From Rhodosorus marinus CCMP1338 (taxonomy: Eukaryota > Plantae > Rhodophyta), in contig JAMWBK010000011.1 of NCBI GenBank assembly GCA_029953675.1, positions 62,001 to 126,000 on the forward strand: 64,000 nt of DNA, given 5' to 3'. The notes under the pieces were generated by a model, which saw only the letters and a list, made by a program, of their open reading frames with translations, did not search any database and was not told the origin of the DNA. Below are positions 5,919 through 59,722 of the stretch, piece by piece. A program made the position numbers and the translations under genes. Position 1 is the stretch's first letter; each line of letters opens with the position of its first letter.

Positions 5919-8063
5919 TCAGGGATCGGCAGGGCTTGTATGGCCAAACAGTTTCTCATTGTTGCTTATAGCCCACTCGCAAGCTTTCTCTGTTTCATGC
6001 TGACTCCCATCAAATATCGACTGAGCTGCACTTTCCATCCATCCTGTCCTGGATGTGGGAACAACCATGTCGTATCCGGCTCTCCTTATAGTCCAAATCT
6101 CCTCGAGAAACCGAAACGCAACCAAAACCGCGCCCAGCAAGCATACGGCCATGACAGTAAACAGACCAGCAACGTACTCAACTCGGATGATTGCGACCTC
6201 TACCCTCTCGTTTAGAAGGAAATCTCTTTCAGAGTCCACGAGCTGGGTCGATAGCAAGCTCATAACGGACACCATCGGATCGTGCACATAAGCCCCAAGG
6301 ACTCTACCGCGCATTGCGCCTCGGTTTGTGAACCAGTGAACGTCATCAAAACTCAAAGACATAGCATCCCGAATATTCTTGAATATCTCATCTGCGTCGG
6401 AATCTGCCCCGACCAGCTCCACTGAAACCCAGGATATCTCCGACTTCAACAAGATCGCTTTCAATCCGTCTAACGCATCGGAACCATCTGATACACTCAC
6501 AGATCTCCACGCCCCGTTCATCCGTGCCACCTTTCCTATTCCATAGACACAGTCAACAGTGCCGCTCCCGTCCTCGCCTTTTACACATGCTGTTTCAAAC
6601 TCTAGCCCCATCACAAACCCGCGCTTCAATCCAGACTTTGACGGCAACAGCTGATCAGCATATTTTTCTCTCACGGCTGCTCCACAGTCCTCCTCCCCTG
6701 ACAAGAAAGCCGCCAGAACGCCTTTCTGAACACCAAACTCCTCCGGCGTCCACCCCTCACCATCCACAAACGATTCACCAGCTACGACATCACACCGGCT
6801 CATAAAGGCCCTACCGAGTATTTTGCTTCCGCATGTCTTTCCATTGAACAGCAGCTGGACATCCACATTAAACTCATTGGGAATCAACGTCGCCGTTGAA
6901 ATGCGCTCCAGCTGACATATATTGCCAAGACGCTGCAGGCTACCTACGGAGATCGAGAATTCCGTGTCCGTGGACGAGCCTCCAAGTCGACGACCAAGGT
7001 CCGTGACGGTGAGCAGATGCTGACCCCCTTCGGCGTAGGCAATCTTGCTGTCTACTTTCACCTCCACAACTTTTGCTCCACTTTGAACTGCCCCACTAGG
7101 AGCTGAAACTGGCACGACGCTCATCGTACTGCGCAGCTGGCGGTCGTCCTTGGCGCTGACAAACCCCGTGTTTTGGAAAAGTCCATTTATGCCGAGCTTT
7201 TCAAAGATCTCACCCATAGCTGGCGAAGGAGGAACCAACAGATTGGCAGGTATGATCTTCACTCTCAAGTCGATGGTCAGGCTCCTGACGTATGTGGCTC
7301 CTTGTTCGCATAGATCATTGTCCTCGAAGTCGATGGTCCCACCAAAGTCCGTGGCAGAGAGCTGAGGCTTCATCACGCAGTAGTCAGGATCGTTAGATCC
7401 GTCCGTCCCAACGTAGAGCGGGATGTAGTCGAACTCCATGTGGTCGATCGCATCTATCTGTCCCAACGAGGTTGCCTGGAAGAGGACACTTGCAAGCCCC
7501 ATAGCTTCCCGAAGCGGCCTTTCAAGCGCATTATCTGCTGCCAGCGCGCGAATTCTGCACCCCGTATAAGACTTATTATAAAGCCGTCTTTCGCAGAAAT
7601 CGTCGCTTCTGTAGAGAGATCGGTACAGCTCCAGCTCCTTATTTAGATTAGGATTCGAGGCAAATCTCAGCACCTGATAGGAATCGGTCAATCCCTCGTT
7701 GCTTATACTCGTCCCGTATTCCAGTCCGTAATCAATTAACGCGTGCAAGGACACAATCCCTAAGGTGAACGCAAACCCGACCATAGAAAAGGCCGTGTGA
7801 AAATTGAAGTTCCGCACCTCCCGGCTCTCCAGCATACCCCGTTGATTCAAGTAGGTGAGCTTGTGCCTTCCTGTCATGAAATACTCGTAAGAGCCGATTC
7901 TTTCAAATGAAAAGATCTTGTTTCCCTTCCTCAGGTCACGTTTCAACTCTAACGTTGACAATGCCCGAGTGAGCCCGATCCATATCCCAGAAAGGATAAT
8001 CAGAAACACGTCCGTCACCACGTTGATAGTAATCGGACTTACGTTCAACGTCAAACTGGACAT
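5919..8063 (-). CDS. Unknown 3-TM, large-ectodomain membrane protein, paralogue 1 of 6 (714 aa, intronless)
   Basis: Long clean ORF. Hydrophobic segments at ~aa 12-35, 92-112 and 632-655. Shared family motifs FSFERIGSYEY, LHALIDYGL, KDDRQL, EF..AC..C.YG, RGR, EY.AGL, VPT...W. Confidence 0.9.
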   Translation of the reverse strand: MSSLTLNVSPITINVVTDVFLIILSGIWIGLTRALSTLELKRDLRKGNKIFSFERIGSYEYFMTGRHKLTYLNQRGMLESREVRNFNFHTAFSMVGFAFTLGIVSLHALIDYGLEYGTSISNEGLTDSYQVLRFASNPNLNKELELYRSLYRSDDFCERRLYNKSYTGCRIRALAADNALERPLREAMGLASVLFQATSLGQIDAIDHMEFDYIPLYVGTDGSNDPDYCVMKPQLSATDFGGTIDFEDNDLCEQGATYVRSLTIDLRVKIIPANLLVPPSPAMGEIFEKLGINGLFQNTGFVSAKDDRQLRSTMSVVPVSAPSGAVQSGAKVVEVKVDSKIAYAEGGQHLLTVTDLGRRLGGSSTDTEFSISVGSLQRLGNICQLERISTATLIPNEFNVDVQLLFNGKTCGSKILGRAFMSRCDVVAGESFVDGEGWTPEEFGVQKGVLAAFLSGEEDCGAAVREKYADQLLPSKSGLKRGFVMGLEFETACVKGEDGSGTVDCVYGIGKVARMNGAWRSVSVSDGSDALDGLKAILLKSEISWVSVELVGADSDADEIFKNIRDAMSLSFDDVHWFTNRGAMRGRVLGAYVHDPMVSVMSLLSTQLVDSERDFLLNERVEVAIIRVEYVAGLFTVMAVCLLGAVLVAFRFLEEIWTIRRAGYDMVVPTSRTGWMESAAQSIFDGSQHETEKACEWAISNNEKLFGHTSPADP

Positions 8064-8742: not shown

Positions 8743-8777
8743 AAAACCAGTCAACACGAACTGTGTTGACTGGTTTT
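8743..8777. repeat. Perfect hairpin/palindrome, 15-bp stem with 5-nt loop
   Basis: aaaaccagtcaacac-gaact-gtgttgactggtttt. Confidence 0.9.
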
Positions 8778-9004: not shown

Positions 9005-9129
9005 CGTACTCAGATCCCCCAACCCAACCGATTAGCATATATATACTCCAAAGCAGCATATGCTGCTCCCAGATTCTCCCTAGCGTACTCAGATCCCCCA
9101 ACCCAACCCATTAGCATATACTCCAAAGC
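9005..9129. repeat. ~48-bp direct repeat (9005-9054, 9084-9129) bracketing a 14-bp palindrome
   Basis: cgtactcagatcccccaacccaaccSattagcatat(atat)actccaaagc occurs twice; gcagcatatgctgc lies at 9053-9066. Confidence 0.85.
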
Positions 9130-10098
9130 CGCTTGTTCTGCTATTAAGGCCGTCACCACCGCCTTTCGCATGGAACTGATATATGATCTGGGGTAAACTG
9201 CCGGTAAAACACCAGGTGTACGTGACGGGCGTGGAGAAATTTCTTCCCAACAGGTTCTTCCCCCTAGACATGACGGTACACAAAATAAACATAATATTAC
9301 ATTAAATTCCAGAAAACATATTAAACTACTCTATCGTTTACAGGAAACAGGGGTCATCTATTGGAGTCAAGCTATTCGCAATCAACGAAAAGCAATGTTC
9401 AATACCCCCACCACACACCTACCAAGCCACTTTCCAAATTACGGGCTTGGCTGGCGCATGGAATGAGTAAGTTTCGCCAAATACTCAATCAAAATATAAA
9501 TCAAAGATGGAAAAACGAGTAAAACAAGTGATAAAAAAAATGGCAATCAAAAATTGCACAACTGTCGCGAATTTACCGGCCAATCTAGAACCGTTTTTGT
9601 AATGGATACGCCTATTAATATATACTATATTGAATGAATTACGGTGTGCGCCTTTATAGAAATCTCACCACTTTTTGTCCGTCACCTCCCGAAAGACTCC
9701 CAAAGGTAAGACCCCCTGAACAAATCTGATCAAGTCTGATATCACGTGTACCCCGAATTCGTTGGTTTACTCTTCTTCCAGCTTCCCAAGTTCGGCCTAG
9801 AGCCGTCTAATATAGTCTTCCGCGCGATCCTAAAATGGTAGCAGAAATACTTCTGAGTACTGCAATGTATCCTTCAGCGCGATTCAAATCTAGCAACGGC
9901 TATTGCTAGTTGCCACTAACATTCACCCAACAAGGCCGACGAATGTACGACCCCGACGACTGTACAACAAAGCCTACAGTCGATCCGATCATACCCCTGG
10001 CCATCCTGGCTACCCCTGGCTATGCTGCAAAGGTTGGAAGAGGTGGGCCTCTTTGGTTGGATCTGGTCGTGTTGGTACATTGGATTGGGAAAGCCGGG

Positions 10099-11292
10099 AT
10101 GATGACCAAACGGGTGAGTATTGGCGTGGTGCTGCTAGCCTCGTTGGCAGCGACTGCAGATGCTCAAGTTAACTGCACGGATGACGCAGACTGCAAGGGA
10201 ATTTGCTACGAAGGCAAGGACTGCAAAAAAAGCAAAACTCTGGTGTTAGAAAATGCAAAGATTCTGAGATAGCGAGCTTGTGTGATCAGTGCTGCGATCC
10301 ACAGTGCGAGAAACCGATCACTTCGAACAAATGCATTGGCCCTCAATGCCAGCCTCAATGCTTCAGGCCAAGAACCGCCATTCTAGAAACTGGCATAACC
10401 TGCTACAAAGCCGGGCTTGCGATAATCTGTGTCATTTGCGAATATCCCGAGTGCTGGAACCGCTTCGTTCCGAAGAAGATCGTTCCGCAGCTGAGGGAAC
10501 AGCTCATAAATACGGACTGTTGCGATGACATTAAGGAGCTTAAGCTGATCTTCAAGTTGGACGGAACGCTGATGGAAGATACCAATGCCGCTATAGGTAT
10601 GAGGGCGTCAGCTACTGCATCAACAAGTGGTTCGACTTGTGAAGTTGAGGATCTACACCAGCTACCAATTGAAGCATAAGGAGGATATCTATTGCACAAG
10701 GAGCAGGATAGCTACTTCGGAGAACTGCCCCCAGTTCAAGCAGGACAACCACAAGTCTATATACAGTATGGCAAAAAGTTTCATATCCACTTTCATGTGC
10801 ATGACTGGAGAAAAAGCAAGCTGCAGGCCCTTCAAGCAGTTCAGGGTGCACATCCCAGACCAAGATTGCAGGCCGTGCAAAGCTGCCCCGTGGAAGCGAG
10901 GTGGTTGCAACAGGTCCGAGCGGATTCTATGAAACTCCTCCGCCCGCGTGCATTGGCAACGGCTTTTCTAGTTCGGCACTTGTGGCGCCTGCTTAGCTGC
11001 GCCTGAACAGTCGTACTTGACGCCATGGGGGATACTGCCATACGTGTATCGATGGTGTACACCGCACTGTCAGATGCGTGAGTCCTACTATTCTTCTTTC
11101 CAGTGTACTGGCATATCAGCAGTGGGCATTCTACATGGGTCCTGCCGATTGTGTTCGTGGAACTCTGTGAGCAGTACTATCGAACATGTTCATTCATCGA
11201 ATAAAAACCGATGGGTCAGATTACAGTCACCCCAGAATACTGCTTTGACATGTTCAAGGGAAATGAATCCGAAACCCTTGGCCATCGGGTGA
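10099..11292 (+). pseudogene. Cys-rich secreted protein gene broken by frameshifts
   Basis: Signal-peptide-like MMTKRVSIGVVLLASLAATADA-Q, then Cys-rich sequence. A frame change at the A7 run (10225-10231) joins it to KCKDSEIASLCDQCCDPQCEKP...CQPQCF...CYK...CVICEYPECW. Further Cys-rich segments follow in shifted frames to ~11290; the 3' extent is uncertain. Confidence 0.6.
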
Positions 11293-12245
11293 ACACTAAA
11301 TATCTGCATTTTATCGTCAATACTATTATAAAGCACGATATGGGTTGGTATTGATGGATTTGCTGGATAAAGTTATTGATATTTACTGTATAATTTATCG
11401 GTTACGGTCAGGTGGGCGACCTAAATCTTGCGGAGGTGGTGTTTTTTGTACAAGTTGTTTTAAGTGTGTGGACTATTATTGTTGAGGCCCCAATGTGAAT
11501 GGCATAGCCGGCTCCCAGTCTAGCATTCCGAAGGCTGCCTTCTGATTAGACCACGTGAGTCGAATCTAGTGCGAGGAAATTTAGAAGACAGAACAAAGGA
11601 ATCCCATTCGTGAACCCCTTGAGTTGAGCAACAACAAAATTGTGGAGACCGAGACTCTCAAGCGCCCCTGATAAGCCAAGCATTCACTACCCTAACGACG
11701 GATAAAAAGGCAGACAAAATGAATCTGATGACGAGGTAGTTTGTTCATCGTGATGCCTTTGTACATTCGTCCTCAATTCGGGGACACGGTCAGATCGTCG
11801 AGAGCTGGCAGCATGGAAACGCGTAGCTTTTCGCTCCTGTTCTCACGAAATGTTTGTTGACCGAAGACGCCTATATGACAACGAGTACATGCAATTCCTG
11901 AAAGCTCGTTGTGTGCGGAGCGGATGTGGTGCTGGTCTGAATATGCGACGCTTGTGATATTTCTTGCCAGTTTCCAAAAATGTGTTATATATAGTTCACC
12001 GCGTGCATCTCGTCCATCACGGCGAGTGCTTACAAAATTCTGTATGTTACAACAACAGCCAAGGCCTCCCGAAACCCAAAACTTCATGTCACCCTGAGAT
12101 AGTGCGACAAGCTCTCTCCTCTGGTGCCTCGGCGTCCCGAAAACATGTACACAAAAGCGCGGGCGAGCTTTCACTCCGGTTCTTAACTGTGAAGTGGGGC
12201 CCCTCGCTTTGCGTATGCACTGGTGCTCCAGTGCGATTGGCTTTC

Positions 12246-14327
12246 TCAGAAAAGCTCCTCGTTGTTTACCTTCGTCCATTCAAAATATTCGTCGTCCTGT
12301 TTTCCTTCACGCGCGCTTGGCGATAGGGCACTATTGATCCACTCCGTCGTTGTGGTGGGAACCCTCATCGTGTACCCAGCTCTCCTCATAATCCGCTTCT
12401 CCTGAAGAAACCGTAGCGCAACCAGCAGCGCGAATAATGCGCATATTGAGAACAGCGCGAGCAGGCCAGCGATGTACTCGACGCGGATAATGGCCACTTC
12501 GTCTTGGTTTGCTAGCAGCAAATCCCTCGAAGCGTGCTCCAGTTGGGTTGATACCAAGCCGAGAACAGACATGATCGGGAAGTGCACAAACGCGCCCAGG
12601 ACTCTACCTCGCATAGCGACTCGGTCCGTGTACCAATGCACATCGGGATAGTGCAAAGCGAGAGCTTCCTGGATATTGTTAAAGACCTCTTCGACGATCT
12701 CTGGATCCGATCCAATGGCCTCTACAGACACCCAAGATATCTCTGACTTTAGCGAGACCACCTGCAGTCCACTCAGCGACTCCTCATCGTCCGATACGCT
12801 CGCCGAGGTCCAACTTCCACGACGCCGCGTCGCAGTATCCAGCCCGTACACGCAGTCGACTTGATCGCTAGCGCCTTCCGACCTGACGCACGCAACTTCA
12901 AACTGCAACCCCATCACAAAAGCACCCTTCGATCCAGACTGCAGCTGATCACTGTACTTTTCTCTCACCACAGCACCACAACCTTCCCCCTCCGAAAACA
13001 GGAGCTCCATTTGTCCTCGGTGAAGACCAAACTCCGTCTTCACCCACCCACGTCCATCCACAAACGACTCACCCTGCACGACATCACATCGATCCAGGTG
13101 GGCGGTTCTGATTATCTCTCCGCACTCATCTCCACCAAACATCAGCTTGACGTCCATATCAAACCTCTCGTCATCTTGACACACCGCGCCATCCCTCTTG
13201 AAGGACTTGTGCGATATTGAGAATTCACTGTCGGCCGCAACACCACCGCGCCGACGCCCAAGGTCGGTGATCCTGAGTAGCCGTTGCCCTCCGGAAGCGT
13301 ATACAATACCGCTGTTAACCCTCACCTCAGCCACCTTGACCCCTTCCGGAGTGGATCCGGTTGGGGTGGAAACCGGCGTGACATCCACCAACGTCCTCAT
13401 TTGGAACTCGTCTTTCGTATTGGCAAATGTCCGATAAAGGATGACTCCGCTGATACGCAGCTGAGTCAGAATCTCTTCGAGATTCTGTGACTGGATTCCC
13501 AGTACGGCGTTCTCGATGCTCCTCACTCGTAGGTCGATGGTTAGGCTCCTAAGGTAGGTACCTTGCTGCTCGCACGCTTCGCCGTTCTCGAACTCAAACG
13601 TCCCGTCAAAATCCAATGCGGAGTACTGGGCCTTCATCTTACAAACATCCGAGTCCTTCGAAGCGTCTGAGCCCACATATATCGGGACGTAGTCGAACTC
13701 CATGTGGTCTATTGCATCAAATGTGGTCAATGTCGCCGCTTGGAAAAGGACGTGTCCAAAGTTCATAGTCTCTCTCAAGTTCCTTCTAAGGATATCGTCA
13801 ACAGTTATTCCCAGTCTTCTACAAATCACGCCCGTGTTCTCCGTGAGACCCTGGTAGCAGAACTCGTCGCTCCGAACCATCTTACCGTAATCTCGGAGCA
13901 GAGCATTCACCTCGGAGTTTGGAGCAAACCTCAAGACTTGGTAGGAAGCTACGGAGTCATCGAGGCTGGTGTTTGTTCCGAAATCTAGGCCGTAATCGAT
14001 CAACGCGTGCAAACTGACGAGCGCTAGAGTAAACCCAAACGCGACAACCGAAAACGCAGTGTGAATGTGAAACCGCCGGGCGTCGTTCTGCTCCAGCATA
14101 TCCCGAGCCTGCAAGTAGGTTATTTTGCTCCTCCCCTTCTCAAAATACTCGTAAGATCCGATTCTCTCAAACGAAAATACTTTCCTTCCCAACCTTAGGT
14201 CCCGTTTCACCTCTAGAGTAGATAAAGTTCGAGTCAGCCAGATCCAAGTCAACGCCAGCAGAATAAGAAGTACATCTGTCAGTACGTTAACAATGACCGG
14301 GCTGATGTTCAACGTCACAGTCGTCAT
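12246..14327 (-). CDS. Unknown 3-TM, large-ectodomain membrane protein, paralogue 2 of 6 (693 aa)
   Basis: Collinear with paralogue 1 over its whole length (FSFERIGSYEY, LHALIDYGL, DAIDHMEFDY, RSLTIDLR, AMRGRVLGA, EYIAGL, VPTTTTEW). Confidence 0.9.
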   Translation of the reverse strand: MTTVTLNISPVIVNVLTDVLLILLALTWIWLTRTLSTLEVKRDLRLGRKVFSFERIGSYEYFEKGRSKITYLQARDMLEQNDARRFHIHTAFSVVAFGFTLALVSLHALIDYGLDFGTNTSLDDSVASYQVLRFAPNSEVNALLRDYGKMVRSDEFCYQGLTENTGVICRRLGITVDDILRRNLRETMNFGHVLFQAATLTTFDAIDHMEFDYVPIYVGSDASKDSDVCKMKAQYSALDFDGTFEFENGEACEQQGTYLRSLTIDLRVRSIENAVLGIQSQNLEEILTQLRISGVILYRTFANTKDEFQMRTLVDVTPVSTPTGSTPEGVKVAEVRVNSGIVYASGGQRLLRITDLGRRRGGVAADSEFSISHKSFKRDGAVCQDDERFDMDVKLMFGGDECGEIIRTAHLDRCDVVQGESFVDGRGWVKTEFGLHRGQMELLFSEGEGCGAVVREKYSDQLQSGSKGAFVMGLQFEVACVRSEGASDQVDCVYGLDTATRRRGSWTSASVSDDEESLSGLQVVSLKSEISWVSVEAIGSDPEIVEEVFNNIQEALALHYPDVHWYTDRVAMRGRVLGAFVHFPIMSVLGLVSTQLEHASRDLLLANQDEVAIIRVEYIAGLLALFSICALFALLVALRFLQEKRIMRRAGYTMRVPTTTTEWINSALSPSAREGKQDDEYFEWTKVNNEELF

Positions 14328-14949
14328 TCTTCACTCAGTGAAATATTTGAAACTTCTTCCTCCCCGGGCTCCTGAAAGACTTCAGAGTCTTCCCGCCCCG
14401 CCGTAACCACAAACCACAGTCAACGACCTCATCATATCCCGCCTTCCAAACCTCGTTGAGCAATGAGCCAACGAGGAGGATAACTTAGCAAAAAAAAATA
14501 GACTCAAACGAAAACTTCCTTGTCGTCTTCAAACCAATACGCCCAAACCCCCTCCCCTTCCCATCCCATCTCCAAGCAGTTTCCCCAAACTATTTCAATC
14601 CCCAAGAAGCTCTTACACTCAAAAACAACTCGGAGCGGAGCGAACACAAAGGCAAATATTTTACCCATTCCTATTCCCCCCCTTCCCATAACACGATTTT
14701 GGCAATAAATAGGTAAATAAGTTTTCAAAACAAAATGTAATAGATTAGAGTTGTCAAACAAAGGGTGGTATATGAAATATATTATTCGGGTTCACTTTCC
14801 GTATCCGCTCTGGTGGGTTTACTCTGTTTAGGCCGCTCCGCCTTACTACCTTATGATATCAGAGGAAGAAAACGGCTTGCGGTGGGGTACTTTGGCTACA
14901 TCAGTGTGTGTGGTACCCCAGGCTGTTGTTCTTCCGCGGACTGTTTTGG

Positions 14950-18468: not shown

Positions 18469-20640
18469 TCACACCCCCAGCCCCGTGTACGGATCGGGAT
18501 TCAAGCCGCCGGTATTCGGAGCGTCTACTGGTGTTTGTGTTGGGAACAGCTGCTTGTTGCTCTTCTGCGCCCACTCGAAGTCTTTCATGTTAGAGTTTCC
18601 TTCTTCCCACTCCAGTGACAGGGTAACACATTCGATCCACTCGGTGACTGTGCGAGGAACAACCATCGCAACTCCAACCCTTTTCAGCGCTCTTCGCTCT
18701 TGCACGTATCGAACGAGCACGACGACTGAGATCAAGACGCAGAGGCCTACTAAAACGGACAGACCCGCAATGTATTCCACTGAGATCAACGAAATCTGTT
18801 CGTTGTCGTGCAGGAATATCGGTATCTCTCCAGGTATAAGCTGCGCCGAGATGAGTCCGAACAAAGTCAAAATCGGGAAATACGCGTGAGCTCCAAGCAC
18901 CCGCCCACGCATCGCCACACGATTTGTGAAGAGGTGCACGTCGGGAAAACTAGTATCAGACAGCAACGTCTTTAAGTTCGAGAATACAGGTCCTGCGATA
19001 TCCGTCGGAACCCTTGAAAGCTCAACGGAAACCCAGGACAGCTCGTGCCTCAGCGACAAAACTCGAAGACCACTAAATTCGTCCTCGTCCTGGCCTTGCT
19101 GCCATTCTCCGTTCACCCTGCTCACTCTTTCCATTCCGTAAACGCATTCGATTTCTCCCGCATCACCTTCAACAGCAACGCAGGCCACCTCAAACTCCAT
19201 TCCAATCGCAAACGATCTGTTCGAACTCGGCAGCTCACCATTCAGTTGGTCAGCATACTTTTCACGTACGATACGACCACATTCGTCATCTTCCGTAAAC
19301 AGCTGGACCAACAGCCCTCTCTGAATACCAAACGTGGTCGGCCTCCAACCCCTCTCATCTGAAAACGATTCCCCGGCTACCACGTCGCACCTACCAAAGC
19401 TAGCCCGTGCACGCAGGTCATGGCAAGCTTTTCCCTGGAAAAGAAGTCCAGTGTCTACGTCAAAGCTATCAGTGATCTCACACACCTTCCCCGTCCTCCG
19501 CGTTGTCTGCTTTTCCAGAAAAAACTCCCCATCGACTGAGACACCGTACGCCCGACGAGAGAGATCGACTACTTTCACCATGCCAGGGGGTTCTTCTACA
19601 TAAACCATCCCACTCCTACCCCTAACCTCCGCGACCTTAACCCCCAGCGGATTCTGTCCACTAGGCGACGGTATCGGGTTCACGTCCACCTTCGTGAGAG
19701 GCTGCCGGTCGTCTTTGATGTTTGTGAAGTACGTGTAGTGGAAAGCACCATCGATCCCGAGCTTCTTGAAGACCTTATCCATGTTTTCTGAGAACGGACC
19801 TAGCACGAAATTGTCCTTCCTCTCCGTTCGGAGCTCGACAGTCAGGCTCCTCAAGTGCGTCCTACCCTGTTCACAGCTGCCATCTTCATTGCTCTCGAAC
19901 TCTAGGTTTCCACTGAAGTCCGAACCGGATTCAATAGACTGAACGGTGCACGAGCTCTCCGTCGCAGACCCCTCCGTCCTCGTTCGCGTGGAAACATAGT
20001 CTATTTCCATATGCTCAATGGTATCAAATTGAGTCAAGGTTGGCGCTTGAAACAGAAAATTGGCAAACAGCATGTTCTCGCGAATATTCCGGAGCAAAGT
20101 GTCGTCCAAAGTTATGCCCCGTATCCTGCAGGCGAGGGACCCCGACGTATCCTGGGCAAGATTTCGAGAGCAAAAATTCGTGGACCTACTGAAAACCTGG
20201 TGCACATTCATTTCGTTGAACAGCCTCGTACTCGCATTCAACTGCACCCCCGGATAGACCGCGCTCGTGTCCAGTTGCTTTCCGCTCGTTCCGAAACCCA
20301 GACCATAGTCAACCAGCGCATGCAAACCTACAAACCCAAGAGTGAATGAGAAGCACAGCACCGAAAAAAAGGTTTGAACGTTGAATTGCCTGGTCGTGCG
20401 ATCATCCAAGAGGTCCCTCGACTTCAGATAGTTGAACTTTTCGCGACCCAGAGAAAAGTACTCGTAAGAGCCGATCCTCTCATACGAAAACACTCTTTTG
20501 TGAGTCATTAAGTCGCGCTTTAACTCCAGAGCCGTCAGCGCCCGTGTCAACCAAAGCCATATCAGTCCAAGAATGATCAGCAGCACATCCGTGAGCACAT
20601 TCAAAGTGACCGGACTCACTGCCAGTTCTATCTCAGTCAT
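18469..20640 (-). CDS. Unknown 3-TM, large-ectodomain membrane protein, paralogue 3 of 6 (723 aa)
   Basis: Same motifs as paralogues 1-2 (FSYERIGSYEY, LHALVDYGL, KDDRQP, ACV..ECVYG, AMRGRVLGA, EYIAGL, VPRTVTEWI). Confidence 0.9.
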   Translation of the reverse strand: MTEIELAVSPVTLNVLTDVLLIILGLIWLWLTRALTALELKRDLMTHKRVFSYERIGSYEYFSLGREKFNYLKSRDLLDDRTTRQFNVQTFFSVLCFSFTLGFVGLHALVDYGLGFGTSGKQLDTSAVYPGVQLNASTRLFNEMNVHQVFSRSTNFCSRNLAQDTSGSLACRIRGITLDDTLLRNIRENMLFANFLFQAPTLTQFDTIEHMEIDYVSTRTRTEGSATESSCTVQSIESGSDFSGNLEFESNEDGSCEQGRTHLRSLTVELRTERKDNFVLGPFSENMDKVFKKLGIDGAFHYTYFTNIKDDRQPLTKVDVNPIPSPSGQNPLGVKVAEVRGRSGMVYVEEPPGMVKVVDLSRRAYGVSVDGEFFLEKQTTRRTGKVCEITDSFDVDTGLLFQGKACHDLRARASFGRCDVVAGESFSDERGWRPTTFGIQRGLLVQLFTEDDECGRIVREKYADQLNGELPSSNRSFAIGMEFEVACVAVEGDAGEIECVYGMERVSRVNGEWQQGQDEDEFSGLRVLSLRHELSWVSVELSRVPTDIAGPVFSNLKTLLSDTSFPDVHLFTNRVAMRGRVLGAHAYFPILTLFGLISAQLIPGEIPIFLHDNEQISLISVEYIAGLSVLVGLCVLISVVVLVRYVQERRALKRVGVAMVVPRTVTEWIECVTLSLEWEEGNSNMKDFEWAQKSNKQLFPTQTPVDAPNTGGLNPDPYTGLGV

Positions 20641-23586: not shown

Positions 23587-25737
23587 TCAATTCGGTTCCA
23601 TAGGTTGAATTGATCCAGTGACGACCTTGCGTCCGTTCTTCTCTTGGGGAGGGTTTACCACGAACTCGTAGCTATGCGCGTACCCCTGCCCCAGCACGTT
23701 CGGGTAGGTTTTCGAACTTGCCAAGACTGAATGAATCCACTCCGTCGCGGTCACCGGTACGGTAACAGATACGTCCAGTTTTCTGTACATCCAGTACTCT
23801 ATAACAAACCGCACCACTGCCATGAACACGGCGACGACGGATATGGATAAAACCGTTATTAAACCGATAATGTACTCGTCCAATAGAACGGACACCGATC
23901 TCATCTCATATCCCATCACGACTCTAGTCTGGGACGAAACTTGAGTGGACAGCGCGAAGATGACATCTCTCATAGAGCGATGGGGTTTTCCGGAAAATAT
24001 TCGTCCCCGCGTGGAGGCACGAGATGAGAAGCGCGCGAGCTCTGGGTAGTTGTTCTTAAAGATCCTCTCCACGTTTCTGAGCGCAGCGTTGACCACTCCT
24101 GGGTCTCCTCCTTGCACCTCAACTCTCATGAAGGCCACTTCGCTCTCGAGCTTTATTTCGGTCAACCCCTCCTCTGCCTCTGGCGTGAACTTGTTTCCGT
24201 TGTAATGGAGTTTGCTGTTTCCGTACACGCAACTGAAACGTCCGTCACTCTGCTTAAAACACGCAATCTCAAATCGCAGGGCGACAAACAGAGCAGTCTG
24301 CTCCAATGGAATGCTTCGATCGATGTACCTCTTGTACCTCTCCAGCACCGTCCGACCACACCGGCTCTTCTGATCAACACCGACGACCATATTGACCATC
24401 TCGAACCCAAATTCCGCCCGCTCTTCCACCCCACTCACAATCCGGAAGGTCTCCATTGTCCGTTGCCTCTTCACCGATTTCATCGACGCTGTGAACCTGT
24501 TGCACGGAATCCCATCAAGTAAGACCTCCAGTGTAGGCCTGTAAGAACCTAACCCAGTCTCATCAAACGCCAAATACATGTAGTCATCCTCGTCTGTTGG
24601 GTTTGGCACGTCGTTGACTTCGACAGGGTTGATTTTGAACTTTCCGTCCGAAGACTCTCCTTTCTTCATTCTCGAGAGATCCACAACCTTCACGGTCTGC
24701 TGCTCGCCCGGTACGTAGTCCACCCTACTGTCCACCACAACCTCCGCATACCTGTGATTTTCCCTCAAGCTTCCAATCGCCTCCGGAGTGAGGGTTGAGA
24801 CTTGGGAAGCAAGCTGCCTGTCATCCTTGAAGCTGCTGAAAGATGCAAACTCAACGGTATGATCGAGATCCATGCCGATGTCAGTATCTCCAGATAAACC
24901 CCGGGGAACTCCATTTTCAAACCCGACTGGAGCCTTTCTAACTGTCCGTTGCGCCCTCATATCCAGTGTCACCTCCCGGAAGAAGAATTTTTGCAACAGG
25001 CACGTCTCGTCATTCAGCTGGAAGATCCCGTCGAAGTCCTCCGCGTTTTTCTCCTCCACGATTTTGCAATCCGGACGCTTCACTTCATGGTCGTATCTAT
25101 CAATACACACGTAATCCAAGGTCAAGCTTTCAATAAAGTCCAACGAGCTAACGCTCGGTGCATGGTAGAGTGATCGAGCGAAGCTCATGCCCTCACGCAG
25201 CTCCTCGAAAATGACCTTCTCCTCTTCATCTATTCTCAACCTACACTTGTCTATATGTCTTTCCTCCGAGATGCACCGGTTGAGCTTTTCAATGGAATCC
25301 ACTTGGCCCATGATGTTCACAATCTCCGCGTTGTCCGACAGGCCTACCATGTCATAAGGAATCGTCTCGTTCGTCGGATCGCTGACTGTTTCGTAGTCAA
25401 GTCCGTAGTCGATCAGGATGTGCAACAGGATCAGCGAGATCGTGAAAAGCAGCGAGATGACGGAGGCGCTCAGGTACAGTTGGAATCGGAACGCTTCACT
25501 CGGAGTTAATAGATCCTTCCTCTTCAGTCTGCGAAATTTTTTCAATCCGTTGGTTAGGTATGATAGAGAGCCGATGGTCTCAAAAGAGAACACTCTCAGA
25601 CCTTTCCGAATGTTTCTCCTCATATCCAGCTCTGTCAGAATCACCATCATCCTTATCCAGATCACTTGAAGCACCAACAGTAGAACGTCCGTCAGAATGT
25701 TTATTGTAGTCGGATCCACATCGATTACAAGCGCCAT
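23587..25737 (-). CDS. Unknown 3-TM, large-ectodomain membrane protein, paralogue 4 of 6
   Basis: Likely start MALVIDVDPTT at 25737 by alignment with the other paralogues. Motifs FSFETIGSLSY, LHILIDYGL, LREGMSFARSLY, KDDRQL, IAC..SCVYG, RGRIF, EYIIGL, VPVTATEWI. Confidence 0.9.
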   Translation of the reverse strand: MALVIDVDPTTINILTDVLLLVLQVIWIRMMVILTELDMRRNIRKGLRVFSFETIGSLSYLTNGLKKFRRLKRKDLLTPSEAFRFQLYLSASVISLLFTISLILLHILIDYGLDYETVSDPTNETIPYDMVGLSDNAEIVNIMGQVDSIEKLNRCISEERHIDKCRLRIDEEEKVIFEELREGMSFARSLYHAPSVSSLDFIESLTLDYVCIDRYDHEVKRPDCKIVEEKNAEDFDGIFQLNDETCLLQKFFFREVTLDMRAQRTVRKAPVGFENGVPRGLSGDTDIGMDLDHTVEFASFSSFKDDRQLASQVSTLTPEAIGSLRENHRYAEVVVDSRVDYVPGEQQTVKVVDLSRMKKGESSDGKFKINPVEVNDVPNPTDEDDYMYLAFDETGLGSYRPTLEVLLDGIPCNRFTASMKSVKRQRTMETFRIVSGVEERAEFGFEMVNMVVGVDQKSRCGRTVLERYKRYIDRSIPLEQTALFVALRFEIACFKQSDGRFSCVYGNSKLHYNGNKFTPEAEEGLTEIKLESEVAFMRVEVQGGDPGVVNAALRNVERIFKNNYPELARFSSRASTRGRIFSGKPHRSMRDVIFALSTQVSSQTRVVMGYEMRSVSVLLDEYIIGLITVLSISVVAVFMAVVRFVIEYWMYRKLDVSVTVPVTATEWIHSVLASSKTYPNVLGQGYAHSYEFVVNPPQEKNGRKVVTGSIQPMEPN

Positions 25738-26151: not shown

Positions 26152-26325
26152 GTCCCCCGACGCCCAACCCAACTCTCCTCAACTTCAACAAATCACCAAC
26201 AAAGCCCCACCCCCCGACGCCCAACCCAACTCTGCTCAACTTCACACATCCCCAACTAAAGCCCTACCCCCCGAAAGCCCAACACAACTCTCCTCAACTC
26301 CAACAAAGCCCCCAACAAAGAATCT
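26152..26325. repeat. C/A-rich minisatellite, ~3 copies of ~58 bp
   Basis: cccccgacgcccaacccaactctSctcaacttc...aaagccc repeated, ~420-590 bp upstream of paralogue 4. Confidence 0.85.
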
Positions 26326-28068: not shown

Positions 28069-29306
28069 CTGACGGTTTTCACTTCCTTGACGTCATGGCA
28101 AGTTCAAAGATTTCCCGAATCTCATCCGCTTGTCTTTCTTCCCCTCCACCCAAAGCTACATTGAATTATGCCAATTATAGTTCGCTGAGGCTAAGCGCTC
28201 ACTCTTCAGATGAGAGTCAAATACTGTGCCAAATCTTGGGGTATGAATAGGCTTGCTTTGACTGGGAGATGATGGAGCCAAGTAAATGGAAGTCGCGGAG
28301 AAAAGTGTTAGGATCTAGGCCGGAAGTGTCGCACTGGAGTGTTGCAAGGTATTAACCGGAGCAATTTTCTCAATGTGACTGCGTCTTTTGCTTTTTTTTG
28401 CGTTTTGCGCATGGAGGGATAGATATCATTATTGTCTGTGATCGGAGCGAAGTCAATAGTCCCTTGATCAATTACATACGCTCATCGCACTGGTACCAGT
28501 ACGGCTGATCGAGTACTGGACTGGATGTACAGAAAACTGGATGCCAACGCTGGTGTCGACAGATTGCGGACGAGAGTGCCTTTTCTTAGCTATACAATTG
28601 TACCACATCATGTTTTCCTCCATATGAGATGGACAATCGAGAATTCACAACAAACCTCCCGAATAAACCACTTCGATAATCAAACCGGAACAAAAGCCGA
28701 AACGCTCCGAGCAAACAATGCCGATGAATCCGCTGCGAGGTGGGTGATCAGGATCGACACGACGACACGTCACTGAGCACCCCTGGAGGTCAACTGTCGA
28801 ATTGCATCAACTGGTCTAGATGACTAGGATAACTGTCATGGTAGTCTCCACCAACTTCAGAGAAGAGCAACCCCTGACTGCACCAATCCAGCGCCCGGAT
28901 CCACCGTTGCCAAGAAAATTCCGCTACAGCGCTTTCGGAACGGGCTCTTGAAACATAAAACACTGCCCAAAAAAAAGTGATGGCTGACACTCGCGTTTTT
29001 CCTTGCAAGAACCTGCGCACTGGGGTGGCGGGTCACGATTCTTTCATGCCTCTATAGGCAACCACAGACGGAATTCTTTCCTTACACGCGTGAGGCGCCA
29101 GCGCTCTGCGCGAGGGGGTTTGGATCGGTTGTGATCAGTTGGTTGCGACCATCGGCTTTCGAGCTCGTATAAATCATTAATTTTGTTAATAAAAAGTCAA
29201 AGTTAGATCATCCCTAACTATATCCTGATACATATTTTGTCCCAGCGAACATGGGGAACACCAACAAGTCAACGTGGTCTAGGCTTGCGCATGGTGTCCG
29301 CTCAAG

Positions 29307-31484
29307 TTAATTCGGTTCCATCGGCTGAATTGATCCAGTAATGACTTTTCGTCCGTCCACCTCTCGGTGAGGGTTTACCACGAACTCGTAAGTATGTGCG
29401 TACCCCGACCCGAGGACTTTCGGGTAGTTTCTCGAGCTCGCCAAGACTGAGTGAATCCACTCTGTCGCGTTCACTGGTACCGTCACAGAAACGTTCTGCT
29501 TTCTGTACATCCAGTACTCGACAATGAACCGCACAAGTGCGATGAGCATAGCGACTACGACTATGGATAAGACCGTAATTAGACCGATGATGTACTCGTC
29601 CAAGAGTACCGACACAGACCTCGTCTCATATCCCATCACGACTCTGGTCTGCGACTTGACTTGAGTGGAGAGCGCAAAGATCAAGTCCCGCACAGAACGA
29701 TGTGGTCTTCCGGCAAATATTCGTCCTCGTGTGGATGCACGAGATGAGAAGCGTGCGAGCTCTGGGTAGTAGTTCTTGAAGATCCTCTCCACGTTTCTCA
29801 GAGCGGCGTTGACCACTCGTGGGTCCCCTCCTTGCACTTCAACTCTCATGAACGCCACTTCGCTCTTGACGTCTATGGATATCAAACCTTTCCGGGCCGG
29901 TGGCTTGAACTTGTTTATCCAATTCTTCCCGTTGAAATAGAGTTTGTTGCTTGCGTTGCTGTTTCCGTAAACGCAACTGAGACGTCCGTCTCTCTGTTTG
30001 AAGCACACAATCTCAAATTCTAGGGAAACAAACAGAGCGGTCTTCTCCGATATAATGGTTCGATTGGCGAAGCTCCGGTATCTCTTCAGCACCGCCTTGC
30101 CACACTTGCTCTCCTGATCAACTCCGACGATCATGTTGACCGTCTCAAACCCAAATTTTGCCCTCTGTTCCTCTCCATCCAGACTTCGGTATGTCTCAGT
30201 GCTCGTTTGCCTCTTCACCGACACCCACGACGCGCTGAACTGGTCGCACTTCTTCCCGTCAATCAGAACGTCCAATGTAAGATTGTAAGCATTTGACTCA
30301 GTTACATCAAACGGGGTCAAGTACATGTAGTCCGGCTGGTCTGCTGGACTAGGCACGTTATCTTCTCGGACAGATTTCACCCTAAACTTTATGTCTGCAA
30401 AGGTTCCTTGTCTAGTCCTCGACAAGTTCAGAACCCTTACTGTTTGCTTTTCTCTGGGTACGTACCGCACCCTACTGTTCACGTCCACCTCTGCATAGCT
30501 AGAGTCTTTACTCAGCTTTCCAATCTTTTCCGGAGCGAGGATTGAAACTTGAGAAGCAAGCTGTCTGTCATCCTTGAAGCTACTGAAAGATGCATACTCA
30601 ACGGGCCGATCGATGTCCGTCATAATCTCCGCACTCCCTAGCAAACCCTCAGGAAACCCATTTTCTAACCCGACCGGAGTCTTTCTAACGGTCCGTTGTG
30701 CCCTCATATCCAGCGTCAACTCCCGGATGAAGAATTTTTGCAACAGACAGGTCTCATTGTTCAGTTGGAAGATTCCGTCGAAGTCCGTCGCGTTTTTCTG
30801 CTCCACGATCTTGCAATCCGGACGCTTCACTTCATGGTTGTCTCTGTCAATACACTTATAATCCAACTTCACGTTTTCAACGATGTCCAACGAGCGAACG
30901 CTCGGCGCATGGTAGAGTGATCGAGCGAAGCTCATCCCCTCACGCAGCTCCTCGAAAATGATCTTCTCCTCTTCATCTATTCTCAACCTACATTTGTCAA
31001 TGTGTTTTTCCTCCGTGATGCACCGGCTGAGCTTTTCTACGGAATCCACTTGGCCCATACTGTTTACAATCTCCGAGTTGTCCGACAGGCCTACCATGTA
31101 ATAAGGAATCGTCTCGTTGGTTGGATCGACGACCGTGACATAGTCAAGTCCGTAATCTATCAGAATGTGCATCAGGACCAGCGATATCGTAAAAAGCAAG
31201 GAGACGATCGAGATTCCCAGGTATAACCGGAACTGGAACGCTTCATTCGGACTTAATATATTCTTCCTTTTCAGTCTCCGAGATTTTTTCCACCCGTGCG
31301 TTAGGTATGACAGAGAGCCCATCGTTTCAAACGAGAACACCCTCCGACCTTTCCGAATGTTCCTCTTCATATCCAGCTCTGTTAGAATCACCATCATCCT
31401 TATCCAGATCACTTGAAGCACCAACAGCAGAATATCCGTGAGGATGTTCACTGTGGTGGGATCCATATCGAGTCGAAACGCCAT
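29307..31484 (-). CDS. Unknown 3-TM, large-ectodomain membrane protein, paralogue 5 of 6
   Basis: Likely start MAFRLDMDPTT at 31484. Closest to paralogue 4, with long identical stretches such as LRIDEEEK.IFEELREGMSFARSLYHAPSV and ARFSSRASTRGRIF. Confidence 0.9.
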   Translation of the reverse strand: MAFRLDMDPTTVNILTDILLLVLQVIWIRMMVILTELDMKRNIRKGRRVFSFETMGSLSYLTHGWKKSRRLKRKNILSPNEAFQFRLYLGISIVSLLFTISLVLMHILIDYGLDYVTVVDPTNETIPYYMVGLSDNSEIVNSMGQVDSVEKLSRCITEEKHIDKCRLRIDEEEKIIFEELREGMSFARSLYHAPSVRSLDIVENVKLDYKCIDRDNHEVKRPDCKIVEQKNATDFDGIFQLNNETCLLQKFFIRELTLDMRAQRTVRKTPVGLENGFPEGLLGSAEIMTDIDRPVEYASFSSFKDDRQLASQVSILAPEKIGKLSKDSSYAEVDVNSRVRYVPREKQTVRVLNLSRTRQGTFADIKFRVKSVREDNVPSPADQPDYMYLTPFDVTESNAYNLTLDVLIDGKKCDQFSASWVSVKRQTSTETYRSLDGEEQRAKFGFETVNMIVGVDQESKCGKAVLKRYRSFANRTIISEKTALFVSLEFEIVCFKQRDGRLSCVYGNSNASNKLYFNGKNWINKFKPPARKGLISIDVKSEVAFMRVEVQGGDPRVVNAALRNVERIFKNYYPELARFSSRASTRGRIFAGRPHRSVRDLIFALSTQVKSQTRVVMGYETRSVSVLLDEYIIGLITVLSIVVVAMLIALVRFIVEYWMYRKQNVSVTVPVNATEWIHSVLASSRNYPKVLGSGYAHTYEFVVNPHREVDGRKVITGSIQPMEPN

Positions 31485-32543
31485 CGCACAACAACCCCGC
31501 TCCCCTCTTCCGCACAAAGCAAAGTCAAATAAGTAGTTTATCATTCACCTTGACCTGCAAACATAGACCTTGAACCGCTCTACATCATCTATCAGAATAA
31601 ATAGACTCCATATCCACCCCTGCTCACTCTATAAAGGGGCAAAAAAATAGAGCCAGCGAGCTCCTCTCATAGCGCACCAAATATTCCCAAACCAAACCGT
31701 CTATCCAGACAAACACCCAAGAAAACACAGCAACCCCCAATTCCCTCCCAATCAAGTCCAGAACGCAAACAAGAAGACAGATCACGCTCTCCAAAAGATC
31801 CCTTACGCAGAACGCTTCCCTTCCTCCACTAAACCAAGCCTTCAATCTACAGAGCCAAGCCCTCGCCGTTCACAAACTGGACTTTACTAGCAAACTAAGC
31901 CGCCAAACACCCCGTCCTCCTCAACCACCCCCCTCCCTAGCAAAGACTCCAGAACTAAAGGTAAATACTTACAACAAGGAGACACACACATACGTTCTTA
32001 CATACAAAATCTGTAGGGAAGCTACCCTTCCTCCTCCTCCTTCCCCAGACAGCAAGTCTACATCATCCCCATAAGAACTTTCTCCTCAAAGCCTACCTCA
32101 GCTCTCGTGAAATGAAAAAAATAGAACAGTTCTCTACATTTGAGTAAAAATACTCAAATTATGATCAGCTTTAGCCATAAAAATAAAAATAAAACCGAAT
32201 ATCAAAGTCCGCTTTCTACATCTGTAATCTTACATCATAATCTTGGTGAATTTCGCCAGAGAGCTTCAGCTGCCAACATCAACTTTTTTTCACCATTAAA
32301 CTGAATAGAACTTTAAATATCGAGCTCCTCACGGGTTGTGCATATTTTGTAGTTAAAAAAGAATTGTAGAGAAAACGGCTGCCGGAAAAAGTAACTTTCT
32401 GCTGGGATCTTCGTTTCAATTTATTTCAACAAATGATGAAATTGTAGCCTAAATTTATCCAGTTAAACGATATAATATATATAGCAATCATATGTCGCCA
32501 CGTGTCCAAGAAAGTGCAGAATTTGATTGTGTCTTTTTTAGTT

Positions 32544-34252: not shown

Positions 34253-36466
34253 CTATGCCGGTGGCTGTATCTGCTGAAATGACCCTGTAACGACTTCTCT
34301 CCCGCCCTCCTCTCTTGGCGGATCCATGAGAAACTCGTATGTGTACGCGTATCCTAGTCCAAGCTCGCTCGGGAAGGTACTGGAGCTCGCGAGTACAGAG
34401 TGAATCCACTCCGTTGTCGTCATCGGCACCTTCACAGATACATTCAGCTTTCGATAGATCCAGTACTCGCTAAGGAACCGCACTAGCGCAACCAGCATCG
34501 CAGCAACGGTAACAGATAGCACGGTAATCAGGCCAATGATGTATTCGGGCAAAAGCACAGCCACGGTTCTCCTCTCCCCAGTCTTCACAGCTCTTGTTTG
34601 GGAGGACACCTGGGTCGAGATCCCAAATATTAATTCCCTCATCGCGGTGTTCAGTCGGCCAGCAAAGATTCGACCTCGCATGCTACCCCTGTGTGAGAAC
34701 CGGTTAAGTTCTGGATAGTAGAGTTTGAAGATCTCCTCGACATTCCGAAGGGCAGCGTCAACTACGCTCGGCTCGCCGCCTTCTACTTCCACTCGCAAGA
34801 AAGACACATCGTTTCTAGTCTTAATTTTTGTCAAACCCTCATTCTTAACTTTCGTTGCATCTGCAACCCAACTCTCTCCGTCGTAGTACAGATTCTTTGG
34901 TCCGTATTGACACCAAAGCTTATCATTCACGTTGTTCCTCGGAACGCACGCAATCTCAAGTGAAAAACCAACAAACAAAGCAGTGCTCTCGCTAGGGATG
35001 CTCTTGTCTATAAACTCATCATATCTCTCCAATAATTTCTTACCACACTCGCTCTGCTGGTCAACCGGTGCGATCATGTTCACAATCTCAAACCCGAATT
35101 CTCGGGTTTCTGCCTGGCCATCTTCTGTTTCCTTGAAGACCTCTTCGGAGCGCTGCCGTTTTACCGACACCCAAGACGCACTGAAACGGTCACAAAACAC
35201 CTCGATCACTTCCTCTTCGTCCTCTTCGTTTTCTGCTGCTACCTTCTCCAGCAAGTGGAGCTCGAGGTCGAGATCGTACGCGTTTGACTCCTCCACGTCG
35301 AAGGGACTGAGGTAAAGATAACTCCTATCCGCTGGGCGATGCACATTCCTCTCTTCTCGCAGAGAAAGCGTAGTTTTCGTGTCGGCAAAAATGCCCCTCT
35401 TCATTCTTCCCAGGTCCACGATCTTGACAGTTTGCTTTGCTCCCGGATCGTAGTTCACGTGGCTGTCGACAATGAGTTCCGCATAACTATAATTTGCGCT
35501 CAGCTTTCCCACCGCCTTTTCCGGAGTCAGTAAGGATACCGTCGATGCTTCCTGATTTTCATCCTTAAAGCTCTTAAATGATGAGTATTCAACCTGCGAC
35601 TCCGCACGCCTCTCGGCATCGACGTCCCTCTCAAGGCTCGCGTTCTCAAGCCCAACTGCCGTAGTCCTAACAGTCCGCTGCGCTCGCATGTCTATCTTCA
35701 CCTCCCGAACAAAGAACTTCTCCAGCACACAATTGTCCTTCGTCAGATTGAAGTTTCCGTCAAAGTCCCCTGCATTATCAAATGCTTGAAACTTGCAGTC
35801 GGGGCGAACTATTGTGTTGTCATCTCGATCAATGCACTTGTAATCCAGCTTCAGCCCCTCCAGAAAGTCAACTTGTGACACGGAAGGCGAGTGGTACAGC
35901 ACGCGTGCAAAGCTCATGCCCTCCCGAAGACGCTCAAAGCTCACGCTTTCCTGTGCATCGACCGAATCCCTGCACCTATCAATCGACTGTTCTCGCTCAA
36001 TGCAATCATTCAGCTGCTCCGTAAAGTTTAGACGACCCATAAGGGCCACAATTTCTGAATTGTCGGATAGCCCAGTCATATCGAACTCAGCCGTAGTGTT
36101 CGTGGACTCTATCACTTCCTTGTAGTCGAGACCATAGTCAATCAGCACATGCATGAGAATCAGCGAGATCGTAAAGAGCAAGGAAATCACGGAGATTCCT
36201 ATGTAGATGCGGAACTGCAACTGCTCATCTCTGGTTAACACGTTTCTCCTCCTGAGCTTTCGGAATTTTCTCCACCCGTGGGTCAGGTAAGATATAGAGC
36301 CAATGTTCTCGAATGAAAAAACCCGCCGTCCATTCCGTATATTCCTTTTCATGTCCAGTTCCGTCAAAACCACCATAACCCTTATCCAAATCACCTGAAG
36401 CACCAACAGAACAATATCCGTCAGGATATTCACTGTGGTGGGATCCATATTGAGTACAACCGCCAT
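34253..36466 (-). CDS. Unknown 3-TM, large-ectodomain membrane protein, paralogue 6 of 6 (737 aa)
   Basis: Subfamily of paralogues 4-5 (MDPTTVNILTD, FSFENIGSISY, LREGMSFARVLY, RGRIF, EYIIGL, VPMTTTEWI), with an acidic insertion ENEEDEEE. Confidence 0.9.
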   Translation of the reverse strand: MAVVLNMDPTTVNILTDIVLLVLQVIWIRVMVVLTELDMKRNIRNGRRVFSFENIGSISYLTHGWRKFRKLRRRNVLTRDEQLQFRIYIGISVISLLFTISLILMHVLIDYGLDYKEVIESTNTTAEFDMTGLSDNSEIVALMGRLNFTEQLNDCIEREQSIDRCRDSVDAQESVSFERLREGMSFARVLYHSPSVSQVDFLEGLKLDYKCIDRDDNTIVRPDCKFQAFDNAGDFDGNFNLTKDNCVLEKFFVREVKIDMRAQRTVRTTAVGLENASLERDVDAERRAESQVEYSSFKSFKDENQEASTVSLLTPEKAVGKLSANYSYAELIVDSHVNYDPGAKQTVKIVDLGRMKRGIFADTKTTLSLREERNVHRPADRSYLYLSPFDVEESNAYDLDLELHLLEKVAAENEEDEEEVIEVFCDRFSASWVSVKRQRSEEVFKETEDGQAETREFGFEIVNMIAPVDQQSECGKKLLERYDEFIDKSIPSESTALFVGFSLEIACVPRNNVNDKLWCQYGPKNLYYDGESWVADATKVKNEGLTKIKTRNDVSFLRVEVEGGEPSVVDAALRNVEEIFKLYYPELNRFSHRGSMRGRIFAGRLNTAMRELIFGISTQVSSQTRAVKTGERRTVAVLLPEYIIGLITVLSVTVAAMLVALVRFLSEYWIYRKLNVSVKVPMTTTEWIHSVLASSSTFPSELGLGYAYTYEFLMDPPREEGGREVVTGSFQQIQPPA

Positions 36467-57911: not shown

Positions 57912-59722
<1,811 letters not shown>

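Follow-up and report, generated by a model that had tools for sequence, protein, structure and literature searches.

An expanded family of three-pass membrane proteins in the unicellular red alga Rhodosorus marinus

Six long, similar open reading frames (ORFs) follow one another on one strand of a 64,000-nucleotide (nt) stretch of the Rhodosorus marinus CCMP1338 genome, raising the question of whether they form a genuine gene family and, if so, what kind of protein they encode. The stretch analyzed, referred to here as the window, is 62–126 kb of contig JAMWBK010000011.1 (contig position = window position + 62000) in the 31.2-Mb nuclear genome assembly GCA_029953675.1 (PMC10250338). An earlier note, made from the sequence alone, had described the six ORFs as intact, co-oriented, intronless and alignable end to end, and had proposed an expanded membrane protein family under selection. 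Taken as a whole, the following description is one of which we are nearly certain: these are native, intact and unspliced nuclear genes of R. marinus, encoding a three-pass membrane protein family known only from the genus, held under purifying selection and expanded by old tandem duplications before the sequenced strains split. What the proteins do is a matter for more tentative proposals.

Gene copies, transcripts and selection

All six ORFs lie on the minus strand, align over their full length and are free of stops and frameshifts, as the earlier note had it. Their products are 693–745 amino acids (aa) long as mechanical ORFs, or 693–737 aa with the starts of copies 4 and 5 corrected, and the start-to-start spacing in the array is 5.0–6.3 kb. 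Copy 1 (5919..8063, 714 aa) is defined by its ORF, alignment, hydropathy, AlphaFold2 secondary structure and a gene call in the genome, copy 2 (12246..14327, 693 aa) by its ORF and an orthologous transcript, copy 3 (18469..20640, 723 aa) by its ORF and a transcript fragment, and copy 6 (34253..36466, 737 aa) by its ORF and alignment. The mechanical ORF of copy 4 (23587-25788) begins at a TTG at 25788 and that of copy 5 (29307-31544) at an ATG at 31544. Translation most likely begins at the ATGs of 25737 and 31484, the starts chosen by the genome's gene calls and by an orthologous transcript, giving products of 716 aa for copy 4 (23587..25737) and 725 aa for copy 5 (29307..31484). Amino acid identity among the copies ranges from 25 to 74%, the highest value being that between copies 4 and 5. 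Identity to copy 1 is 54% for copy 2, 44% for copy 3, 28% for copy 4, 27% for copy 5 and 26% for copy 6, and two subgroups are visible, copies 1–3 and copies 4–6.

The array proved larger than the six members first described. A seventh copy of 716 aa lies on the same strand about 3 kb to the left of the window (contig ~56.8–58.9 kb, start at 58922). Over its first 334 residues it shares 38% identity with copy 1, and every N-terminal motif is there. The NCBI model of this gene, NDN08_007015 (573 aa), starts only at the internal Met144 and can be aligned with copy 1 as far as the C-terminus; it is N-terminally truncated, missing the first two transmembrane helices (TM1 and TM2) and the loop between them. 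Because the N-terminal part and the C-terminal alignment to copy 1 together span the gene, the seventh copy is intact. To the right of copy 6 (36467-64000), tblastn revealed no further family sequence, and copy 6 is thus the last member on that side. Solo members occur on contig 2 (KAJ8907279.1) and contig 4 (KAJ8905651.1), with unrelated genes on either side, and two more paralogue lineages (P0008 and P0009) are known solely from transcriptomes of other strains. The family is therefore expanded, as had been claimed, with at least seven members in tandem and at least two dispersed, both counts being lower bounds.

Transcripts of orthologues are available from the strains MMETSP0011 and MMETSP0315 rather than from CCMP1338. 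The MMETSP0315 transcriptome contains P0004, which is 86–87% identical to copy 2, and P0007, a 384-aa transcript fragment 90% identical to copy 3, while P0012/P0006 from MMETSP0011 are 82–83% identical to copy 5. Transcripts of the orthologues of copies 2, 3 and 5 thus exist, and absence of expression, which the earlier note had named as telling against the family, was not what we found. The copy 2 orthologue transcript aligns with window positions 11992-14497 and the copy 5 orthologue transcript with 29165-31735, each in one gapless block (86% and 84% nt identity, respectively). The genes are therefore unspliced and the orthologues expressed; the intronless state proposed from the ORFs is confirmed by this colinearity. 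The mRNA is about 2.5 kb, with short untranslated regions (UTRs).

As an observation in its own right, the CCMP1338, MMETSP0011 and MMETSP0315 cultures differ by 14–16% of nucleotides across family mRNAs, UTRs included (dS ~0.3–0.4). This sequence divergence suggests that the cultures, all labelled R. marinus, are distinct species rather than strains.

The ratio of nonsynonymous to synonymous substitution rates (dN/dS) was measured where synonymous sites are unsaturated, dS being saturated between most pairs. It was 0.21 for copy 2 against its orthologue, 0.26 for copy 5 against its orthologue, and 0.30 for copy 4 against copy 5. By region, it was lowest in the block formed by TM1, the loop and TM2 (0.12–0.23) and highest in the large domain between TM2 and the third helix, TM3 (0.24–0.33). 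No 60-codon window exceeded 0.67, so that neither positive selection, at that resolution, nor decay is indicated. All copies are held under purifying selection, and the earlier claim of selection stands, with dN/dS at 0.21–0.33 and not near 1. In the tree, each orthologue from another strain clusters with one single window copy; the duplications are therefore older than the strain split, without recent homogenization. The third-position G+C content (GC3) of the family is 0.58–0.63, equal to that of neighboring host genes, and the genes therefore look native and not recently acquired.

Topology, conserved residues and the search for relatives

Hydropathy identifies three hydrophobic segments, in agreement with the earlier designation as membrane proteins. 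In copy 1, TM1 comprises aa 11–33 (7965-8033), followed by a predicted cytosolic loop of 55 basic-rich residues (aa 34–88), TM2 (aa 89–113; 7725-7799), a predicted ectodomain of ~510 aa (aa 114–627; 6183-7724), TM3 (aa 628–652; 6108-6182) and a predicted cytosolic tail (aa 653–714). In the alignment, Lys and Arg abound in the 34–88 loop and in the stretch following TM3, 9–12 Cys fall within the 114–627 domain compared with 0–5 elsewhere, and most N-x-S/T sequons also fall within that domain. In four members N7 lies in a sequon as well, as would suit an N-terminus outside the membrane. The distribution of Lys/Arg, of Cys and sequons, the N7 sequon and a strand at residues 3–6 in the AlphaFold2 model together lead to the proposed topology: N-terminus out, TM1, cytosolic loop, TM2, ectodomain, TM3, cytosolic tail. 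Cleavage of TM1 as a signal peptide can be excluded, because its residues P10, N14, T17, D18, L21 and W28 are invariant and all lie on one helical face.

Sequence conservation is concentrated in the membrane part. At the end of TM2, H107, L109, D111, Y112, G113 and L114 are invariant (H107-x-L-I/V-D111-Y-G-L), and TM3 begins with E629-Y630-x-x-G633. Among the 13 members, mean pairwise identity is 49% in TM1, 45% in the cytosolic loop, 51% in TM2, 29% in the ectodomain, 39% in TM3, 41% in the juxtamembrane motif and 21% in the distal tail, making the TM1–loop–TM2 block the most conserved part of the protein (45–51% vs. 29% for the ectodomain). Eight Cys are common to all six window copies (C157, C169, C229, C252, C411, C460, C493 and C505 in copy 1 numbering), as the earlier note had counted, once the C157 column is aligned, which it is only in the 12-sequence alignment. 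The motifs TD..L, FS[FY]E..GS..Y, H.L[IV]DYGL, LRE.M, DF.G, KD, C.YG, RGR and EY..GL listed there are likewise present in the copies; the last of its list, VP.T..[EG]W, needs correction, the tail motif actually reading VPxxxT[EG]W. A family-defining set, consisting of N14/T17/D18, H-x-L-I/V-D-Y-G-L, seven invariant Cys, K-D-x-x-Q, Y630/G633 and P669/W675, is found in the six window copies, the seventh copy, the two solo genomic copies and four transcriptome members.

Two AlphaFold2 models were obtained, the first with a predicted local distance difference test score (pLDDT) of 64. The second, from a shallow 12-sequence alignment of a single genus, reached a pLDDT of 76 (five models, 70–76) and a predicted template-modelling score of 0.67. 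The modelled ectodomain is alpha+beta. One beta-hairpin (114–134) comes straight out of TM2 and another (608–627) runs straight into TM3, with no linker. A four-helix subdomain (139–196) contains C157, C169 and the LRE motif, and is followed by ~15 strands, two of them 19 residues long (415–433 and 437–455), and by helices at 557–579 and 595–605. Comparison of sub-alignments with hhalign revealed no internal duplication of the ectodomain.

Searches for relatives returned Rhodosorus proteins and noise. Searches of Pfam-A by hmmscan with 6 and 12 members, at expectation values (E) up to 1 and 10, gave scattered single-member noise only, in line with the earlier statement that no Pfam family was recognizable, and NCBIfam and PHROGs gave only noise. 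A profile search of PDB sequences produced two chance matches at E 0.88 and then none. When 1.84 billion sequences representing ~15 billion proteins were searched exhaustively with the family profile, seven matches emerged, all from Rhodosorus (E ≤1e-113), and nothing weaker, leaving the twilight zone empty. A word-indexed search of 5.8 billion proteins also returned only Rhodosorus; it missed known members and so added little. Foldseek searches against PDB (models with pLDDT 64 and 76) and BFVD (model with pLDDT 64 only) gave no match with E <0.01, the best matches having E ≥0.07, probability ≤0.10 and query TM-score ≤0.10. The recurring names among these (YidC periplasmic domain, Ups1/PRELID, FaNaC1, aerolysin-type proteins and porins) are at noise level, and nothing was drawn from them. 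Scanning of IMG/VR and JGI metagenome contigs with family motifs yielded no confirmed relative. The profile searches and the Foldseek searches with AlphaFold2 models thus gave no full-length match to a characterized family, which the earlier note had named as a finding that would overturn its reading.

Family members are public as "uncharacterized protein" in UniProt (A0A7S0FZH4, A0A7S3EDB7, A0A7S0BQT2, A0A7S3A1P4, A0AAV8UXF8 and A0AAV8UYQ2) and, unnamed and undescribed, at NCBI (KAJ8907279.1 and KAJ8905651.1). Expanded orphan families of membrane proteins are frequent among thinly sampled protists. In the literature searched, we found no publication treating these proteins as a family; the CCMP1338 genome paper concerns mitochondrial minicircles (PMC10250338).

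Comparison with named systems gives the same picture. CD36/LIMP-2 have an ectodomain of ~400–500 aa with conserved Cys, bracketed by two TM helices with both ends of the unit cytosolic, a layout like the one predicted here; the Rhodosorus family differs in its extra helix TM1 and in the conserved polar core of its membrane part. There was no Pfam match to CD36 and class B scavenger receptors (PF01130), and neither CD36 nor LIMP-2 was among the Foldseek matches listed. HAP2/GCS1 and class II fusion proteins have a three-domain beta fold that includes a fusion loop, together with a signal peptide and a single C-terminal TM, in contrast to the two conserved N-terminal TM helices of the Rhodosorus family; they gave no Pfam match and were absent from the PDB and BFVD Foldseek matches listed. 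Aerolysin-type beta pore-forming proteins, which have an elongated beta-sheet fold and an insertion hairpin, were rejected as relatives, their Foldseek matches (E ≥0.15, probability ≤0.03, query TM-score ~0.04–0.05) being noise-like. Judged from sequence profiles and predicted models, the family, and apparently its fold, lies outside every known kind compared.

Spacers and genomic surroundings

The spacers of the array are 2.8–4.2 kb long with a G+C content of 44–47%. The earlier note had called them decayed, which is an interpretation only: blastn and tblastx found no similarity of spacer to spacer, and tblastn found no family fragments or pseudogenes anywhere in the window, spacers included. 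A comparison of nine 800-nt upstream regions gave no more shared promoter words than did shuffled sequence. Three copies have C/A-rich tandem repeats (G-rich on the coding strand) upstream of their start codons, and these may be promoter-associated. They comprise a 57-nt unit repeated 2.9 times (26154-26320) ~400–600 nt upstream of copy 4, CCCTCCAAA x 6 (36870-36923) ~400–600 nt upstream of copy 6, and a pair of ~60 nt (9005-9142) ~940 nt upstream of copy 1. The only gene called in a spacer (~10099-10679, plus strand) encodes a small Cys-rich protein of 152 aa, and in the ORF at 10203-10679 the Cys-rich TIL domain is matched below threshold (E 0.004; 17.6 bits, cut-off 24.5).

An 827-aa ORF with a reverse-transcriptase domain (1873..4356, plus strand; RVT_1, E 2.6e-15) sits in the ~9-kb gap between copy 1 and the seventh copy, on the strand opposite to theirs. 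The assembly's list has no gene call for it, and self-comparison found no LTR-like (long terminal repeat) direct repeats; a 99-nt inverted repeat (478-576 / 667-765) lies nearby. This ORF is probably a retroelement inserted in the array, outside the family.

Other genes in the window are ordinary eukaryotic ones: an UNC-50 exon, a Raf1-like Rubisco assembly factor, a Toprim domain, a WD40 protein, a Tim44-like protein, an actin-related protein and two tandem Pyr_redox_2 genes. The last are spliced Pyr_redox_2 / Pyr_redox oxidoreductase genes on the plus strand (57996-59727 and 60782-62518), tandem duplicates with 69% nt identity over ~1.75 kb. A Pyr_redox_2 gene also lies near the solo copy P0011; it showed no tblastx similarity to the window pair at 1e-8, and an ancient segmental duplication joining the two loci was rejected on this result. 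A 317-nt direct repeat (40557-40873 / 41735-42051), with 77% nt identity and 73% aa identity in one frame, follows the UNC-50 exon (38663-39037) and stands just before the Raf1-like gene (42406-43155). The surroundings of the solo paralogues are unusually gene-poor, the nearest upstream called gene being ~4–7 kb away and that downstream of P0010 ~9 kb. This setting resembles the 3–4 kb array spacers; elsewhere in the window, gene density is roughly one per 3 kb.

Candidate functions

The cell-surface location and the receptor or channel role suggested in the earlier note are candidates only, and guesses at that. As our preferred model, we tentatively propose, by analogy, that each protein could be a subunit of an oligomeric, ectodomain-gated, channel-like sensor. 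The fast-diverging ectodomain would recognize an external cue, with paralogues differing in the cue, and the beta-strands leaving TM2 and entering TM3 would transmit its movement to the membrane part. There, a conserved polar cluster at one outer-leaflet depth, made up of N14/T17/D18 on one face of TM1, H107/D111 where TM2 ends on the outer side and E629/Y630 where TM3 begins, would form an ion site, path or gate, and the conserved cytosolic loop and juxtamembrane motif would close the inner side or bind a partner. The model was chosen because the strongest constraint falls on the membrane part, with invariant Asn, Thr, Asp and His in or at the edge of the bilayer, and because strands rather than linkers would join the ectodomain rigidly to the helices while diversification is mainly in the ectodomain. 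A conserved polar membrane core rigidly joined to a variable ectodomain, together with tandem expansion, is the pattern of ectodomain-gated and chemoreceptor channels such as DEG/ENaC, P2X and PAC.

In DEG/ENaC/ASIC, P2X and PAC/TMEM206, as probably in the Rhodosorus proteins, a large disulfide-bonded ectodomain lies between two TM helices, beta-strands are continuous with the helices, and conserved motifs are found in the short cytosolic ends. Tandem expansion of these families is frequent in animals, with divergent ectodomains and conserved membrane parts. The likeness would be one of resemblance, not of membership. Unlike these trimeric two-TM channels, the Rhodosorus family has an extra conserved N-terminal TM helix, giving three predicted TMs with the N-terminus outside, and none of the signature motifs of those families was seen in it. 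In Pfam-A, neither the set of 6 nor that of 12 members gave a match to ASC (PF00858) at E up to 10. P2X (PF00864) gave no Pfam or PDB sequence match, and no P2X was among the Foldseek matches listed.

Several points weigh against a channel-like sensor. In neither sequence (Pfam, PDB sequences) nor fold (Foldseek against PDB) did the family show likeness to any channel. The nearest approach, the DEG/ENaC channel FaNaC1 (8on7/8on9), scored E 0.5–1.2, probability 0.04–0.06 and query TM-score 0.09–0.10 in Foldseek, a match at noise level, and the DEG/ENaC ectodomain fold (palm, finger, thumb and beta-ball) was rejected accordingly. The oligomer and the location at the surface are assumptions of the model. 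D18, H107, D111 and E629/Y630 would lie at similar depth in the outer leaflet, but this placement, like the strand pairing and the clustering of polar residues in space, is read from sequence position only. The polar TM residues could equally be explained by packing of a three-helix bundle or by assembly with a partner. The ectodomain also has invariant R185/E186, D212/Y213, K305/D306/Q309, R358, R585 and S605/Q607, and these polar residues could be an enzyme or ligand site.

The features that suggest a sensor can also be accommodated by a non-conducting surface receptor or an adhesion or matrix-anchoring protein, a possibility that we hold just as tentatively. The variable ectodomain would then bind wall or mucilage polymers, cells or environmental ligands, while the TM core and the cytosolic motifs recruit a conserved partner. 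A large ectodomain with Cys and sequons, diverging faster than the rest, and the tandem expansion are consistent with such a role, the conserved cytosolic loop and VPxxxT[EG]W could be docking sites, and charged TM residues are known to assemble receptor subunits with partners. However, no signalling, adhesion or lectin domain is recognizable in Pfam or by Foldseek against PDB, the ectodomain is without repeats, several members have only 0–2 sequons, and three TM helices with the highest conservation in the membrane part are unusual for adhesins. A membrane-anchored enzyme or processing factor, with the large domain outside or in the lumen of the endoplasmic reticulum, Golgi or vacuole, is somewhat less likely but a serious rival. 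Such a protein might act, for example, on sulfated red-algal matrix polysaccharides, with paralogues differing in substrate. The topology fits a lumenal domain equally well, purifying selection extends along the entire large domain, and R185, E186, D212, Y213, K305, D306, Q309, R358, R585, S605 and Q607 are invariant across it; yet conservation peaks in the TM and cytosolic part rather than in this domain, and neither the profile searches nor the Foldseek searches described above pointed to an enzyme family or fold.

Two further explanations carry much less weight. A domesticated viral or transposon envelope or fusogen gene, multiplied in the genome, would account for a beta-rich, Cys-containing ectodomain followed by a C-terminal TM, for the narrow taxonomic range and for the reverse-transcriptase ORF adjoining copy 1. 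We disfavor it as very unlikely: that ORF is single, on the other strand and absent from the other repeat units, the flanks have no LTRs or element-like features, and GC3 is the same as in host genes. Moreover, two conserved N-terminal TM helices stand where a signal peptide would be, BFVD, PHROGs and IMG/VR contigs yielded nothing, and the PDB matches listed include no HAP2 or class II fusion structure. The idea that the array is non-functional repeated DNA or an annotation artefact, its frames open by chance or its copies very recent, has nothing in its favor beyond the absence of a known function, and we give it practically no credence. The copies share 25–74% identity, yet every one is intact; dS is saturated in most pairs, and dN/dS is 0.2–0.3 where measurable. 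Orthologues are transcribed in two other strains, and the colinear transcripts together with dN/dS refute this explanation.

The boldest reading is that the family represents a kind of ion channel or chemosensory receptor-channel not seen before, with an ectodomain of new fold, invented or radically remodelled in one unicellular red-algal lineage. The polar TM1/TM2/TM3 cluster would then be its pore or ion site, and the paralogues of the array would be a repertoire of ligand specificities. We regard this as unlikely, though well short of implausible. Environmental sensing in free-living mesophilic red algae is poorly known. According to a published study (PMC6811547), about one quarter of the ancestral genes were lost in red algae. 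The genes described here are intronless and ~2.2 kb long, suited to heterologous expression, and the proposals are thus directly testable; the value of the family depends on what its function proves to be. As an expanded, conserved membrane family whose orthologues are expressed and for which no relative was found, it is a candidate for lineage-specific sensing or surface biology in Rhodosorus, and possibly for a new membrane-protein fold.

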